Source: Piromyces finnis finn (taxonomy: Eukaryota; Fungi; Neocallimastigomycota). From it: a stretch of 64,000 bases of DNA. Of the stretch, positions 1 through 8,944 are shown piece after piece (the first letter of the stretch is position 1; each line of letters opens with the position of its first letter). Below the pieces are notes generated by a model. It saw only the letters and a program-made list of their open reading frames with translations. It was not told where the DNA came from and did not search any database. The translations under genes were made by a program, and so were the position numbers. Location of the stretch: positions 310,001 to 374,000 of the forward strand of contig MCFH01000044.1 of assembly GCA_002104945.1 (NCBI GenBank), in the 5' to 3' direction.

Positions 1-3000
1 TTCCCCTTTATAAGTAATACAAATGCTTTGACCATCCATATTAGTATTCGGTGTGCATTTATTATTGTTATTATATATACATGTAATGTCTTTCATGAAG
101 GAATAACTATCAGTAGTTACATCATATTTTATTATTTTTTTATTAATATCAGTAATGTACATTGTAGAATCAGGTTTTTTCACAATAGTACAGCCATTTT
201 CATTGCATTTATATAATTTTGTTTTTTCATTGTTATAACTATTAATATCATCAGATGATGCAAGCATTGCTGTATTTGTATTGATAAAGAGATAACCATC
301 ACTAAATACTTGAGAAATACTATGTTCATTGAGTTTATAAATAATATCTCCGTAAATATAATAATAACTATTATATTGTTTTCCTACTTTCAAACAATTT
401 TTTGACGTAACATCTAGTAAGGTTTCACCTGATCTTGTACTTTGTTTAACAGATATTGATCCAGTCGCAAAATAAATTTGGCTATGATCTGTATTAGTAC
501 AGTAATCACCAGCATTTATAGTAGTAATTTGATTATATATAGAAGATGTAGAAGATGGTAAAACAATAGTACACTTATCATCAATATAGTTACAAATAGG
601 AACTTGAGTTAATTCTTCAGAAGAAAGTTCATGACATCCTTCTTGATTGCAAATAATTAAATTGTAAATAGAATTTGCTCTCCGAACAAACCTCGATAAA
701 CTTCTTTTACTGTTAGATGATAATTTTACTGTGTTAGCTGAACGGAAAACCCCATTTTTAGCAATAATAGATTTACATTTATTTTCCACACAATCAATTA
801 AAACATTTGATGTTGTAGAAACATAAAAACCTTTCTCACCTTCAATTAATTCACATACCATATCTATTGAAACTTCATTTTCACATTTAATAAGATATTT
901 TTTTGACTTTTGAGATCCCCCATAATAATAATAACCAGATGTGGCTTTTATCTCATTACACGAATTTCCTTCGCAATGAATAAGACTATTTTTATTTTCA
1001 GATATGAAATATCCTGTTGTTACTGATTGAGTTATGCAAGTATTGATATTACAATGAATAAGAGGTTTTTGATGACTATCTATTCCATTATTGATAAATG
1101 ATGCTACTATTGAAATAGGTCTTGGAGCATTACAAAAATTATTATCATTACAATAAATAAGACGATTAGAATATATATCAACATGGCTTACACCAGCAAT
1201 GTAATATCCAATGCTTGAAGTTATAGTATTACAATTTTTACCATTACAATAAATTAAGTTTTTATTATTTTTTTCTAATGAAGATAAATTTATTTGAGTT
1301 TTTGATAAATAATTGATTCCTGCGTTTAAATAATATTGATTTGTATCATTTACTGAGGTACATTTAAATTCATTATTACAATAAAATAAATAAGGTGTAT
1401 TTTTTCCAACATATCGACTTCCATCAATATAATATCCTTCATTAGTTAAAGGTTTTAATATATTACTATTACAATAGTATCCCACTTCCGATGTAACATC
1501 AAGATAAAATTCATTAGTTATACATGAAGTAATTTTATTACAGGTCATACTTTTTTTAATACAGCTATAAACTTCACTATTTTCATCTAATGTAATCTCG
1601 TTAGTAGCTAAATAATGATCCGAACTAATTGATAATATTCCATCAACAGAATATCTAGTAATTGAATATTTAGAAACTTTAAATATAGTTTTCTTCGACT
1701 CATTAATACTATTTATACTTGGGAAAGTATTTTTATCATTTATTTCAATATTGAAAAACAAATTAGTAGTAGGAGATGTTACATTGGTAGGTGTAATTGT
1801 ATCATTATAATAAAAACCCAATATTGAGTTTGAATATTTATATCCTCCTTTTTTTTGTAAATCCAAAACATTTGTAGTATAGCAACTCTCATCACATATA
1901 ATTATTGGCTTTGAATCATCACCAGCGTTAATATAAAAACCAGGGAAAATATCATCTTTTATTTTTAATGCATTGCATTTTTCTCTATTACATGTAATTA
2001 ATGGATAGAAACTAGCATATTTTCCGGAATTCATATAATAACCTGGATTTATTTTTGATGAAGAAACATATTTACATATAATATTTGAATATTCGTCTCC
2101 ACAGTAAATTAACATATTATTAATAGTAGTCGCAGCTTTATTTAAATAATAAGAATCATTTTCAGCTACTTTATTGTCACATGTTCCACCTACATTACAA
2201 TAAATTAAAGTTTTGAAAATTTCTACATTAGAAGTATTTGGTTTTATTGTATTTGTAATATAATAAGAATCATTGGTTTCATTAATAGTTGTACATCCAT
2301 TATTAATACAAGCAATTAATGCGTCAGTAGAGTTATTACTAGCTGTATTAATATAGTATGAATTATTAATTCCTTTTATTATTGAAGAAGCTGAATTCAA
2401 ATCCCAGTAAATTAAAGCATTACTTAAACCTTCTGCTATTCCACTTAAATAAAATGAGTCAACTTTAGCTGATTTAATGGTACATAAGTCGCTTCTTGAA
2501 CAATAAATTAAACCATTCTCTTTTCCTGTTTTTGCCCCATTTATATAAAATAGATTTTCTTTTCCTTTTTCTATTAAACAAAACGAAGAATAACAATGAA
2601 TTAATGCATCATCTAGAGATGAATAATCCCCATTTATATAATAACTATCAGATGAAGTTGGAGTATAATGAATACATGATATTGGATTACAGGTAATTAA
2701 AGAGTTAACTAATGATCCGGATACGGCTCCATTTAAATAGTAATAATTAATTTTTCCTTTTTCAATTGAACATTTTATTTCAGTTCCATCAAAATTATTG
2801 ACACAATGAATTAATGATGTAGGATCTATATCATAGTTAAAATAGTGTTCTTTCCCTTTTATAGTTCTACATGATGAATTATCATTACTACAAAATATAA
2901 GTTGATTTATAGATTTATCATTCCCACTATTTATATAATATGAATTTGGTGAAACTGAAGTAAAAGGTATACTTATACATTCAGTATTTGAACAATTAAT

Positions 3001-3740
3001 TAAACCACTTTCATTTGTGGAACTTACATATTGAGTATTTTCCTTTGGTGATATACTTTTACATTTTGTTGAGTCTTCACATATAATTAATGCATTTGTT
3101 AATCCTTTACCTAATCCATTTATATATACATTATTTCTTGTTCCAGAACCTTCTGTAACACAGCCGTTAACCAAATCACAAGTAATTAATAATGGATATT
3201 CTAAATTAGTTATAAATGTACTTTTTCTTGATATAGCAATTGAATTGCTGTCACTGTCTTTATTATATGAAACTACATTTTTTTTAGAGAGTTCATTAAT
3301 ATATATTGCGCTTTTTTCTATTTCTGTACATAAACTATTTGAAGAACAATAATATCCGGAATCGGGATTAGAATCTGCATTGGTTATTATTTCATCGCCT
3401 TTAAAGAAGTAATAACCATTATTAGATATTAAAGCCGCTAATTCACAACCACCAGCTTTAGTATTTCCGATATATATTTTTGTTCCCTCAATACAATATT
3501 TACCGAAATTTAATAAACTTTTCCCAACAGTTATAGTACAGATATTTGAAGTATTGGTACATGATGATAATGAATAAATTTCTTTTACAAAATTAAAGAT
3601 TATAGCATAAATAAATATACTATATTATTAAAAATATATACATAGAAAAATATATTAATAATATATTTAACTAGGAATAACCTTTTAAACAAATAATTAA
3701 TTAAAATTTACCTATAATTTTTATAATCATATATTTTCAT
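1..3740 (-). CDS. Large secreted Cys-repeat protein, fungal cellulosome scaffoldin-like (partial; C-terminus beyond position 1)
   Basis: Absent from the ORF track. ATG at 3740, exon 1 is 3740-3712, a GT-AG intron spans 3711-3620, then the frame is stop-free from 3619 to 1 (~1200 codons, read by hand). The N-terminus MKIYDYKNYSIFIYAIIFNFVKEIYS resembles a signal peptide. The motif [GS]YYxN...LIxC..C recurs every ~35-45 aa (e.g. SYYINTASNNSTDALIACINNGC, PGYYMNSGKYASFYPLITCNREKC). Confidence 0.8.
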
Positions 3741-4177
3741 TTTTTTTTCAATTATTTTAATATACTTCGATAACTATTTCTTTTTTTTCAACCTATATTT
3801 ATATTATAATCTTTTCTATTTTTTAATTTGGTCGATGTTTTTATTATATAATATCATATTTATGTAATTTAAATATATGTTTTCTATTGATTATAATTAA
3901 TAAAAGTAAAATAATCATTGTTAATTTTTAAAATATGATTAAATATATATAACCTTAACTTTAAAAAGTTTTTTTTTTTCAATTTTTTTTTTTTTTTTTT
4001 TTTTGTAAATAAAAAATTTTTATTCTCAAGAATATTTTTAAAAATTTACATTAATATTTTATATTTTTGTTTGATGTTTATTTTACAGTATATTAAGTCA
4101 TCATTTTTACATTAAAAATAAATTTAAATCAATGCTTTTTAATTAATTTTTTTTACTTAAAATTATTATTATTTTTT

Positions 4178-6832
4178 TTATTTATTCTTTGATTTTACTT
4201 TTTTTGTGGTTTCTTTTTTAGGTGGAGTTGTAGTTTTTTTAGTATCCTTTTTATTAGAACCTTTCTTATTAGACTGACTATTCTTATCATCTTTCACACA
4301 TCTCATGTTTTCTAACTCAATATTAATGTTATCAATACGTTCCGTAACATATTGAGTATTTTTAGTTATTACTTCTTCAATATGCTTCTGTAACTGAGTA
4401 AAATACTGATCTTTAAGTATTTCGGAGTTTTGAATAATTGTTTCTACTTGTTCAGGATTATATACAATTCTGATATTTTTATCATCATTATCATCCCTTT
4501 CTTTAGTAATCTCTTTAATTTTTTTAATTAGCTCTTGACGACTATTTTCCAATTTTATAAGAGATTGTTCACTAATAGCTAATTCTAATTTTTCATTTTT
4601 TTGTTGTAATTCAAGATTAAGATTATCTAATAATTCTTTTTGCTTTTGTTCTCTTTCAATAACCTGCTTTTTCCATAAGTTTAAGAAACTATTTCTAAAT
4701 TTAGGATTTGATATATTGAATTTTTTGCTTTTAATATTATCTTCAGTATAATTTTCTTTATCATTATCCTCTTTTTCTTTTTCGTCTTTATCTGTGTCTA
4801 CTATATTTTCTTGTTCCATTTTACTTTCATTATTTTCTTCATCTGATTTTATATATGGAATAACAGGTAATTCACTAATTTTTTTATCAGATGGTTTATA
4901 TAATAGTGACAACAATGCTAAAACAATATTTAAAATGATAGTAAACTTAATATAAATAAGGAAATAGTTTATTAATATTTTATAAATAAATTAATATACA
5001 ATTTATTATATTATCTTGTGCTTCTTTTAGTTTTTGTTTAGCCAATTCTTCTTCTATTCTTTCTTTTTCTTTTAGTATTTCTTCTTCTTTCTTTTTTCTT
5101 TCAAGTTCTATAGCCTAAAAATTTATTTATAAATGGTTTTATTTCAATTACTAACGATGAAATAATTATATATTTAATTACTATTACTAACTTCTTCTTC
5201 TTCCTTTTTTTTCTTTATTAATTTATTTTCTTGTTCCTGCACCCAATTTGGCCATTCTTCAGCAATTATTCCATGTTCTAATTCTTCAAACACTACAGGT
5301 GGAACAACTGTTTTATTATAATCAACAAATATATTTTCTTGTGGATGTGAAAATACATATGCTATTATATTAATATGTTGTATATAGCTTTATATAATTT
5401 AAATTTTTTAAATCTGAATTAGCTATATATATTTTGATTTCATATTATATTAAATTATGAATTACGTTTTTAAAAAGAATCTTATAAGGCATTCAATTTG
5501 TAATTCATTAAATGTTCTTGGTATATTATATTCAAATATATAAAAATCTTTATTAATATTGTCCACTTCATCATCATATTCATCACTATTATAACTATTA
5601 TCATTACTACATAATTCATCTTCAAAACTATCACTTATTGTAGTATTTTTACTAAGTTTTATTGAGCATTTAGAATTTATTATATTACTATTATTATCAT
5701 TATTATTTTGAAGACTAGCTGAATAATTACTTGCTTTTGATTGCAGACTTTTTCTTGATAAATTATTATTATCATTATTTTTTATTGAACTTGAATTTAA
5801 ATTTTCATTTTTTGTTGGAAGGATAGAATCAAATACACCTGGTTTTACATATCTATTTGCCATTAGAATCTCCTCTAAATTTTCGTTATCTAAATTCAAA
5901 ATCTCTGGATTATCACTATTATTTTTATTATCCTCACATTCTTTTAAATAAAGTGTAACTGTTCTTGGATTACAGTAATAATAAAGTTCATTTTTAAATA
6001 TTTTTAAACATTGGGATCTATAAGTCGAGTAATTTGTTGATATGTTTAAATAATCTTTTTACATATATAAATATTGTTTAGTAATGCTTATATTTTAATT
6101 TTAATATCATTTATTATTTTATTATATATAATTTCTAAAATAATATTTGAATATATACTAATAAATTTTTCATGAGTTTCTTTAAAAATATTGAACCAAC
6201 TTGAACATTGCCATTTTGTTAAATATATACTATACCCATAAGTAATATTAAATTAATTTTTTTAATAATTATTTTAAGTTAAGAAATAATATGAATAATA
6301 AATAATATATAATTATTTATAATATTTATAATATTTATAATATATATAAAAAAAGATATCATATTATATCTAAGTAATATTGGAGTATTATCATGTTTCT
6401 TTTTCTTTCATCATCTACTTCAATTGATGTTATTTGATCATTAGTGTATGGTATTGTTAGATGTTCTAATTGATATTTTCTTGTTGTAGGTAAATCTATA
6501 TTTAATTTTGATGATAAAAGTGTTCTAATATTAAAATAATAATAAAAAAGAAATATTAACTCAATTTATTTTTAATTACTTTATTATTTTTTATTTATAC
6601 AGCATTACTTTATATTTTCCATGTTATTTCTTTTAATGTTTGCTTTTAGGTCTTTCAACTCTGAATAAATTGTATCCATATCATTTTTTCCTAAGAATAA
6701 TCCGTCATATGCAGCAATAACTGAATATGGTAGTTTATTTGGTTCATTGTTTATTTTTTTTTCATTAGATTCAGTAATTATAAAAGAATTATCTTTATTT
6801 TCTATATTATTATTTCCTTTTTTTTTTAACAT
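4178..6832 (-). CDS. CFAP119: CFAP119/CCDC189 (flagellar central-pair C1a-32, CLAMP domain)-like protein, multi-exon
   Basis: The spliced product contains MIILQYYLDIICYGYSIYLTKWQCSSWFNIFKETHEKFI and FFLKTYIQHINIIAYVFSHPQ. These match the family pattern as I recall it (..LDLF..AL.FC..QGFS.EQTSA...LLQDLH and NTYFRHFKLYKYVFTPQ). The gene joins track ORFs 6605-6832, 5462-5899 and 4178-4915 through GT-AG introns and one AT-AC intron. Confidence 0.7.
6242..6359 (-). other. AT-AC (U12-type, minor spliceosome) intron, 118 nt, phase 2
   Basis: 5' end ATATCTTTTTTT at 6359, branch-like TTTCTTAACT at 6286-6277, 3' end ...AATATTAC at 6242. Removing it joins TG+T into a Cys codon and restores the frame. 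There is no usable GT donor at the end of the upstream exon. Confidence 0.8.
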
Positions 6833-8944
6833 TTTTAATTAATGATTTGACTTGGATCAAATTATACAAATTTAAATGAGATAGTAATTAAAATGGAAAT
6901 AAATAATATTTAAACTTTTATATATATAAATATATTAAAGATTTGTAGCAGTTTTTATGTTTTTATTTGCAAACTATGTAAAATAAATACTTTTGTAAAT
7001 ATTTTATTTTAATTTACTTTGATTATTCATATTTATTATATACTTATTATATTATAATATATTTTATAATATAATTGTGTTTCGGACTTTAAATAGAAAA
7101 GGTTAAAGGAATAAAACATAAATGTATACAAATTATATATAAATTGTCAACAAATTTAATATTCAAACTTTAATTATTAATAAATATCTACTTATTAATT
7201 TGTTGGCAAAAAAAATACTTGTTCTTTAGAAGTTACAATTATTGTATTGTTCTATATGAAAATTTTTATTATTGATAAACAATAAAATGAATTTATGAAA
7301 TGTATTACAATAAATGCTTTCTTTCTTGTTTAAATATAATATATATTCTAATATTTATTCTTTTGAATAAGTTAATATTTTTAACTTTTCAAAATCTTTT
7401 GATTTAAAATATGGTTTTTTTTAAAAATAGTAATTATTATTCATTATATTATTATTATATTTGATATATAGTTATATGAATGTACTTTTGTTTTTTAATT
7501 TATTACATCTAATTGAATTGAAAAAAAAAAAAAAGAAATGAAGAATAATATATTATTATAATATTGAGGATATAGAATATAGAAATAGAAAACAATATTG
7601 TAAAAAGTATTTAATTATTAATAATTATTAAGGTGATGATTTATTTTAATTTATGCTAATTTATTTATATAAATATTTATAATATAAAATTATTTCCGTC
7701 AAAATAAAAAAAAGATATTTTCAAATAAAAAAAGATTTTAAAAAGGTTAAAAATTTATATGTAAATAAAATTTATAAATATTTATTAAAATTTTAATATA
7801 ATTATTTAAATAAATTTATATAATTTATTTTAAATAAAAAAGAAAACACCTTTTTTTTTTTTTTTTTTTTTACAATTTTATTTAAGCTTTTACTTTGTAA
7901 AATTTGATATTATTTATTGAAAAATATTTAATATCTTTAAAGAATAAAAAGTAGAATTAATATTAAAACAGGAAAGGATTTAAATATGAATATTTAAATA
8001 GAAATATTAGATATAACTATACTTAATAATTAAAAAAAAAAGGACCTTTTTTTTTTTTTTAATTATTATTAATAATAATTATTTGATATTTTTATACTTC
8101 AAAGAATATCAATTTATATTCAGTTAAAATTAATATAGTTTAAAATAAAACAATAAAAGTCGTTTCATTCATAATAAATTAAATCAATAGAATATATGAT
8201 AAAAATTAAAGATAAAATCAAATGATATAATTTTTATTTTAATTTAAAATATAAAGAGAAATAAACCAAATATGAATATATAAATAAACATTAGATATTA
8301 AAAAAAAAAAGTCAATATTTAAGAATTAAATTTCATATAATAAAGGTATAAATAATTTAAAAGTAATTACATAAAAATAAAGTAAAGGAAAATTATTATA
8401 ATTATTGTAATTAATAATTAACAATTTTATTTTAATTTATACTGCATTTTGTTTAAATGAAAAAATATTTTCAATCAATATATTATATTATAATATAGGT
8501 CTTCTTTATTTGGTTTATTAATATTGATAATTTAACAAAGAAAAATGTAATAAAAATTATAACATAATATTTTTATTAATAAAATTTGTATATTTACTTT
8601 TTAAAATTGTCATATAAAAATATTTATAACAATACATAATCATAGATAAGATATATATATATATAATATTATAATTTAAGTATAACTTAAGCGAAAAAGT
8701 TTAAAAAATCAGAATTATTAAACACACAAGATATTTATTATTATTATTATTATTATTATTAATTTTCAATATTAAAAATATATATATAAAAAAAAAAAAA
8801 TCTAATTGATTCACATAAATTACATTTAATATTTATTAAAAAAAAATTAAAAAGCAAAAAATTATATTTAAAATAAGAATTAAAAGTAAATCATAAAGAA
8901 AAACATTTTGAAATTATTTTATTCAATATTATAAAGTTTTCAAT

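Follow-up and report, generated by a model that had tools for sequence, protein, structure and literature searches.

How can a reading frame be carried across an exon that runs into an in-frame stop codon and offers no usable GT donor? This question is raised by a minus-strand gene in the 64-kb stretch of Piromyces finnis contig MCFH01000044.1 analysed here (the window). The second exon of this gene ends ...gat ata ata tg|a, and retention of the sequence that follows, intron 2, creates an in-frame TGA at 6361-6359. Exon 3 opens t tat ggg tat agt. Splicing between the two at AT and AC yields TGT (Cys) and the predicted junction peptide ...LDIICYGYSIYLTKWQCSSWF.... A preliminary description of this DNA had given these intron coordinates, the peptide and the stop, and had seen no usable GT; all are exact in the reading frame. 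Exon 2 has a single GT in its last 60 nucleotides (nt), at 6418-6417, and splicing there would remove 19 residues conserved among the orthologues. Very probably, the segment 6359-6242 is a U12-type AT-AC intron, the second intron of a seven-exon, 703-codon gene for a coiled-coil protein of the CLAMP/C1a-32 family, presumably of the zoospore flagellum.

The exact AT-AC junction at intron 2 was observed in Neocallimastix RNA. Two Logan contigs that have no introns (L005 and L006, from SRR13090312 and SRR13090305) and translate to the whole protein were compared with the genomic loci of N. lanati (L003) and of assembly GCA_002104975.1 (L004). The match between complementary DNA (cDNA) and genome was exact and defined six introns, five of them GT-AG. 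Intron 2 was uniquely placed as ATATCCTTTCAT...GCTATATTAC, an AT-AC intron of 340 nt ending TATTAC. Intron-free JGI contigs from three more species (L002, L007 and L015/L016), with about 80% DNA identity to every genome compared, read TG-T TAT GGG across the junction, and a 28-nt junction pattern is an exact substring of one of them (L007, sample 3300030915). The predicted P. finnis junction gave no exact match in the metagenome_contigs collection, and a protein-pattern scan of it confirmed nothing; as the pattern present in L007 was not returned, the collection evidently lacks these JGI samples and the blanks are uninformative. When 1.84 billion representatives were searched with the exon 2 peptide using HMMER, the single match was an Anaeromyces robustus model of 657 amino acids (aa), with the sequence ...LQYYLDMI-C-YGYSIYLTKWQCSSWF..., exactly the predicted junction. 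Further orthologues, of 494-724 aa, were obtained by word-based searches. The junction peptide of the preliminary description is thus encoded exactly by orthologous mRNAs.

In P. finnis itself, transcripts were assessed by the share of sequence words found in sequencing runs. The stretch 6159-6293, which consists of exon 3 and the last 52 nt of intron 2, was sampled with 11 words; exon 3 by itself would give a share of 0.50, and a retained intron about 1.0. The DNA run held 1.00 of these words, and RNA runs X2 and X4 held 0.46 and 0.27. Over the whole gene (4100-6900), the share for run X2 was 0.73, where complete splicing into a seven-exon transcript predicts 0.74. These values suggest that the P. 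finnis RNA contigs are without the 3′ part of intron 2. They are consistent with removal of the intron, without fixing the exact junction in this species, which would by homology be the same AT-AC junction as in Neocallimastix. The protein collection searched yielded no protein derived from a P. finnis transcript.

The intron is conserved in five anaerobic-fungus genomes, where the codon in question reads TG|ATATC(C/T)TT...TTCTTAACTT...YAC|TTA (Y, pyrimidine). In A. robustus (L001), Piromyces sp. E2 (L017) and a metagenome species (L008-L014), TG|ATATCCTT...TTCTTAACTT...AC|TTA is found at the same codon and in the same phase. In each of the lineages a retained intron brings TGA to the junction, as had been claimed for P. 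finnis. The suggestion in the preliminary description that slow splicing could gate expression finds no support in these data. The five orthologous introns are otherwise unalignable; TTCTTAACTT is the sole word of at least 8 nt that all five have in common. The 5′ splice site is ATATCCTT in four of the five genomes, Piromyces sp. E2 included; T at +6 is peculiar to P. finnis. Because the other four genomes carry the canonical ATATCCTT, the P. finnis site ATATCTTT is a single species-specific C-to-T change, described here for the first time. The AT-shifted consensus that had been proposed for this fungus is not borne out by the canonical sites of the other four genomes.

Within P. finnis intron 2, the minus strand begins with ATATCTTT, carries TTTCTTAAC at 6286-6278 and ends TATTAC before exon TTATGGG. 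The 5′ site agrees with the U12 consensus /RTATCCTT at seven of eight positions. A polypyrimidine tract is absent: A and T are mixed in the spacer that precedes the 3′ splice site, and T/C residues form no consistent run there. The GT-AG introns of the same gene have TACTAAC-like boxes, unlike the U12 box T(T/C)CTTAAC of intron 2. The window is extremely AT-rich (13-33% GC), and 15 copies of ATATCTTT (20.5 expected) and three of TTCTTAAC (5.1 expected) were counted in it. Taken singly, neither motif is above chance. What is above chance is the pairing of the two at the sole frame-preserving site together with conservation in five lineages. The AT-AC intron with U12-type 5′ and branch signals that had been described from the P. 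finnis sequence is seen in five genomes, with its junction exact in Neocallimastix cDNA.

A pair of the same motifs that mimics a U12 intron was seen elsewhere in the window, at 14347-14273 on the minus strand, where ATATCCTT is followed by TTCTTAAC 60 nt further on the same strand. This pair was rejected as an intron because it runs antisense to the beginning of a plus-strand open reading frame (MENKISYEEKRKELKD...). It is a false positive for scans based on motifs only.

In canonical minor introns the branch box lies about 10-20 nt from the 3′ splice site. The distance from the putative branch A to the 3′ splice site is 37 nt in P. finnis, 72 nt in Piromyces sp. E2, 86 nt in the metagenome species, 95 nt in Neocallimastix and 106 nt in A. 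robustus, so that in none of the five lineages does the box have the short spacing of U12-type introns. No conserved alternative box was found nearer the 3′ end among the five orthologous introns. A conserved, putative branch motif 37-106 nt from the 3′ splice site is a new observation. The preliminary description had put the distance at about 35 nt; the measured value is 36-37 nt, and that this is long for a U12-type intron had been overlooked.

Several observations weigh against a U12-type intron at 6359-6242. In minor introns the branch site is reported to be kept close to the 3′ splice site by a well-defined constraint on distance (PMC1557818; PMC11347168), and the 37 nt seen here and the 72-106 nt of the orthologues violate this rule; either the rule is relaxed in the Neocallimastigomycota lineage or the true branch is elsewhere. 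The T at +6 weakens the P. finnis 5′ site. An Rfam scan of window parts 1-6293 and 6350-64000 found no small nuclear RNA (snRNA) gene. Finally, the support for the junction in P. finnis itself is indirect and consists of frame, homology and the word shares from 11 words.

The branch distance would be accommodated if the AT-AC intron were excised by the major (U2-type) spliceosome or by one of mixed character, since 37-106 nt is outside the U12 norm and fits U2-type flexibility, and U2-type AT-AC introns do exist (PMC1557818). The 5′ site is nevertheless ATATCCTT in four of five lineages and not ATAAGT-like; the conserved internal box is the U12 box and not one of the TACTAAC-like boxes of the neighbouring GT-AG introns; and the spacer has no consistent polypyrimidine tract. 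We regard excision of this kind as very unlikely. Dependence of intron 2 on the minor spliceosome, with TTCTTAAC as the actual branch site, is what the signals in the sequence point to.

The choice of acceptor was considered separately. An AG at 6231-6230, 12 nt past the AC of intron 2, likewise preserves the frame. P. finnis could join the same AT donor to this AG, giving an AT-AG intron and ...LDIIC-IYLTKW... without YGYS; AT-AG termini are known as rare U12 variants (PMC10639083). All six cDNAs from other species, however, use AC and encode YG(Y/F)S, P. finnis keeps the four YGYS codons intact and identical at the protein level, and the AC is reached before the AG downstream of the branch motif. 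Because all the cDNAs use AC, the four intervening codons are conserved and the AC comes first after the branch box, AC is favoured over the downstream AG, the use of which in P. finnis we hold to be remoter still than a U2-type intron. The AC placed by the preliminary description was accordingly borne out in the orthologue cDNAs, and the frame-keeping AG had escaped it.

With the AT-AC junction in place, the seven exons (Table 1) join into a model of 703 codons with one terminal stop. Its product has 56-66% identity to the orthologues across their full length, and P. finnis and Neocallimastix agree exactly in the length of four internal exons (165, 83, 196 and 115 nt).

Table 1. Features of the P. 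finnis gene and of its second intron (window coordinates).
Feature	Position	Strand	Remarks
Exon 1	6609..6832	-	Coding sequence from ATG 6832-6830; from open reading frame; identical to N-terminus of annotated P. finnis protein P0007
Intron 1, GT-AG (GTAATG...ATTAG)	6525..6608	-	84 nt, phase 2; position matches Neocallimastix intron 1
Exon 2	6360..6524	-	165 nt, ends ...LQYYLDII + TG; length as in Neocallimastix cDNA exon 2
Intron 2, probable U12-type AT-AC	6242..6359	-	118 nt, phase 2
Intron 2, 5′ splice site ATATCTTT	6352..6359	-	Canonical ATATCCTT with C-to-T at +6
Intron 2, branch-site motif TTCTTAACTT	6276..6285	-	Putative branch A 37 nt from 3′ splice site
Intron 2, 3′ terminal AC	6242..6243	-	Context TTAC|T; first YAC/YAG, and first C or G, past the branch motif
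Exon 3	6159..6241	-	83 nt (C-YGYSIYLTKWQCSSWFNIFKETHEKFI); 83-nt counterpart in Neocallimastix cDNA
Intron 3, GT-AG (GTATAT...AAAAG)	6055..6158	-	104 nt, phase 1; position as in A. robustus and Neocallimastix
Exon 4	5466..6054	-	N/S-rich insertion and beginning of Pfam CLAMP match
Intron 4, GT-AG	5388..5465	-	78 nt
Exon 5	5192..5387	-	196 nt; length as in Neocallimastix
Intron 5, GT-AG (GTTAGT...TTTAG)	5115..5191	-	77 nt; placed to agree with orthologues
Exon 6	5000..5114	-	115 nt; length as in Neocallimastix
Intron 6, GT-AG	4918..4999	-	82 nt
Exon 7, with stop codon	4178..4917	-	Coiled-coil C-terminal half

The public annotation breaks this 703-aa gene at intron 2 into two models, BCR36DRAFT_373173 (129 aa) and BCR36DRAFT_373172 (539 aa), an error reported here for the first time. 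The former terminates at the retention TGA. The latter takes an out-of-frame MAMFK start within exon 3 and has a forced GT-AG splice. That two such genes exist as annotated (models P0007 and P0010), or that the gene has been broken by loss of splicing at the weakened +6 C-to-T site and ends at the TGA, is the least probable of the alternatives, since the 539-aa model requires its out-of-frame start inside a conserved exon, the exon 3 codons are fully conserved, the RNA runs have exon 3 words apparently without intron-containing words, and the orthologues are one protein of 657-724 aa. Models in other species also fail at this intron. The Orpinomyces sp. model P0009 has a 12-residue deletion across the junction and loses QYYLDILCYGYS, and in Piromyces sp. 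E2 (P0013 / L017) exons 2-3 are skipped and the gene is split into 240-aa and 230-aa genes. A warning had been given that standard GT-AG predictors would mis-model this gene, and it was correct because the P. finnis, Orpinomyces and Piromyces sp. E2 models all err at intron 2.

At intron 5 (5115-5191, minus strand), BCR36DRAFT_373172 reads ...EEEEVSNKLERKK at a place where ...EEEAAIELERKK is found in all orthologues. The donor GTTAGT at 5191 and the acceptor TTTAG at 5115 give the orthologue-like AIELERKK and exons of the Neocallimastix lengths (196 and 115 nt). Because this pair restores both, intron 5 of the public model is probably misplaced by 9-10 nt at each end. Downstream on the same strand, a gene of about 1400-1590 aa is found in L001, L003, L008 and L017, and local synteny is conserved.

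The literature records minor introns and minor snRNAs in both P. finnis and N. californiae (PMC10639083; PMC11347168). The working minor spliceosome that the preliminary description deduced is hence already known for this species and is not new. U11, U12 and U6atac have been reported for Neocallimastigomycetes (PMC10639083; PMC11347168), and the following course of splicing may be proposed. U11 and U6atac would pair with the 5′ site ATATCTTT, the C-to-T change at +6 turning a G-C pair into G-U. U12 would pair with the conserved TTTCTTAAC, where again G-U would replace G-C. The shared word TTCTTAACTT is the U12 branch box with a single C-to-T change. Both motif deviations are transitions that, by established pairing schemes, would give G-U pairs, with U11/U6atac in the one case and with U12 in the other. 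In the second step, TG would be joined to T at the first downstream YAC, 37 nt from the branch A, to give Cys-Tyr-Gly. The intron is inherited: at least five Neocallimastigomycota genomes have it at one codon and in one phase, in each case as AT-AC and with an identical branch motif. Its branch-to-acceptor spacer has drifted to 37-106 nt.

The composition of these spacers was compared with composition shuffles. YAC/YAG is absent from the spacers of all five lineages where 5.5 are expected (product of P about 0.002), and AC/AG occurs twice against 11.3 expected. Because the spacers are without any YAC/YAG, the data suggest that splicing takes the first YAC past the branch box as its 3′ site; five related lineages are modest evidence. 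A strict rule of the first AC/AG after the branch was rejected, the Piromyces sp. E2 spacer having two AAC sites, and the YAC/YAG form holds. The spacers are mutually unalignable. In A. robustus (L001:3390-3440) a run of about 31 A and (TAA)n were seen, and in Neocallimastix (L003:2840-2900) a direct tandem duplication of about 28 nt; this growth by simple sequence added no AC or AG in either.

The spacer of the metagenome species (L008:4597-4689; 85 nt) folds as one long hairpin (-16.3 kcal/mol, z = -3.55, 0/200 shuffles), which would leave about 14 unpaired nt from the branch box to the AC. A conserved hairpin that shortens the distance was rejected, as the fold is significant in L008 alone and absent in the other four lineages.

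These features may be tentatively drawn together in a proposal that we put at somewhat below even chances. The minor spliceosome of Neocallimastigomycota would have lost the short distance rule: U12 would act on TTCTTAAC 40 to more than 100 nt upstream, and the first YAC/YAG would be taken and kept unique by an exclusion zone in a repeat-expandable, A/T-only spacer. If true, this would be a lineage-wide shift in minor 3′ splice-site choice, and classifiers limited to a window would under-score such introns. Branch scoring in intronIC is limited to -55 to -5 (PMC7367187), and in three orthologues the branch box is outside this range.

The identity of the protein was addressed with profiles and learned features. 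Pfam CLAMP (PF14769, 'Flagellar C1a complex subunit C1a-32') matches six of seven proteins that contain the region, always in the same place. The scores are 24.9 bits for P0005, 22.0 for P0002 and 16.4 for P. finnis P0010 against a gathering cut-off of 22.7, and the matches cover profile positions 62-97 of 99 only. ESM features of the whole protein place CLAMP clusters adjoining at 0.86-0.87, with 196-198 shared features, and those of residues 70-235, junction included, place CLAMP clusters at 0.82. Because of the Pfam matches and of this placement beside CLAMP clusters, the P. finnis protein is likely to be a member of the CLAMP/C1a-32 family. The preliminary description had named it CFAP119. 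This stands at the level of the family; among ESM clusters, those nearest to the protein are C10orf107- and C8orf74-like, and orthology to CFAP119 rather than to the paralogues CABCOCO1 or C8orf74 is unproven.

Other searches added little. HMMER with exon 2 and profile searches gave no relative outside Neocallimastigomycota, and sequence searches of the PDB with the family profiles gave chance matches only. Pfam on single exon pieces returned nothing useful, exon 4 by itself was uninformative as an ESM atlas query, and an AF2 model of residues 70-400 had a pLDDT of 35 and was unusable.

For the annotation, two P. finnis 'hypothetical proteins' become one 703-aa protein, likely of a flagellar family. 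Counts of minor introns in anaerobic fungi that are based on annotation are underestimates, because intron 2 also derailed the Orpinomyces and Piromyces sp. E2 models. The locus offers a five-lineage, cDNA-anchored case of a probable U12-type intron with a distant branch box. If this is general, it would challenge both a textbook constraint on minor splicing and the reliance of classifiers on fixed search windows.

When compared with the canonical U12 AT-AC introns of animals and plants, P. finnis intron 2 shares the AT-AC termini, the rigid /ATATCCTT 5′ site, the absence of a polypyrimidine tract and the position as the lone such intron among GT-AG neighbours. The canonical branch box is TCCTTAAC, and here it would be TTCTTAAC, with a G-U pair for G-C. 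The intron differs in its branch box, which is 37 nt (P. finnis) to 106 nt (A. robustus) out and not about 10-20, and in the T at +6 of P. finnis. U2-type AT-AC (type II) introns also have AT-AC termini and possibly a distant branch, but their 5′ site is like the U2 consensus (ATAAGT) whereas that of intron 2 is of the U12 consensus. The minor introns published for Neocallimastigomycetes by Larue & Roy 2023 (PMC10639083) and Olthof et al. 2024 (PMC11347168; 129 minor introns in N. californiae) belong to the same lineage and intron class, but the surveys classify annotated introns and P. finnis intron 2 is unannotated.

At the protein level, the known system is CFAP119/CCDC189 (Chlamydomonas C1a-32, of the central-pair C1a projection). 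Bovine CCDC189/CFAP119 has a CLAMP domain and then a coiled coil (PMC6460654). The P. finnis protein is twice as long (703 aa), has an N/S-rich insertion of 100-150 aa inside the domain, and its family matches the last third of the PF14769 profile alone. It shares with CFAP119 the order of a PF14769 match followed by a coiled coil, in a flagellated organism.

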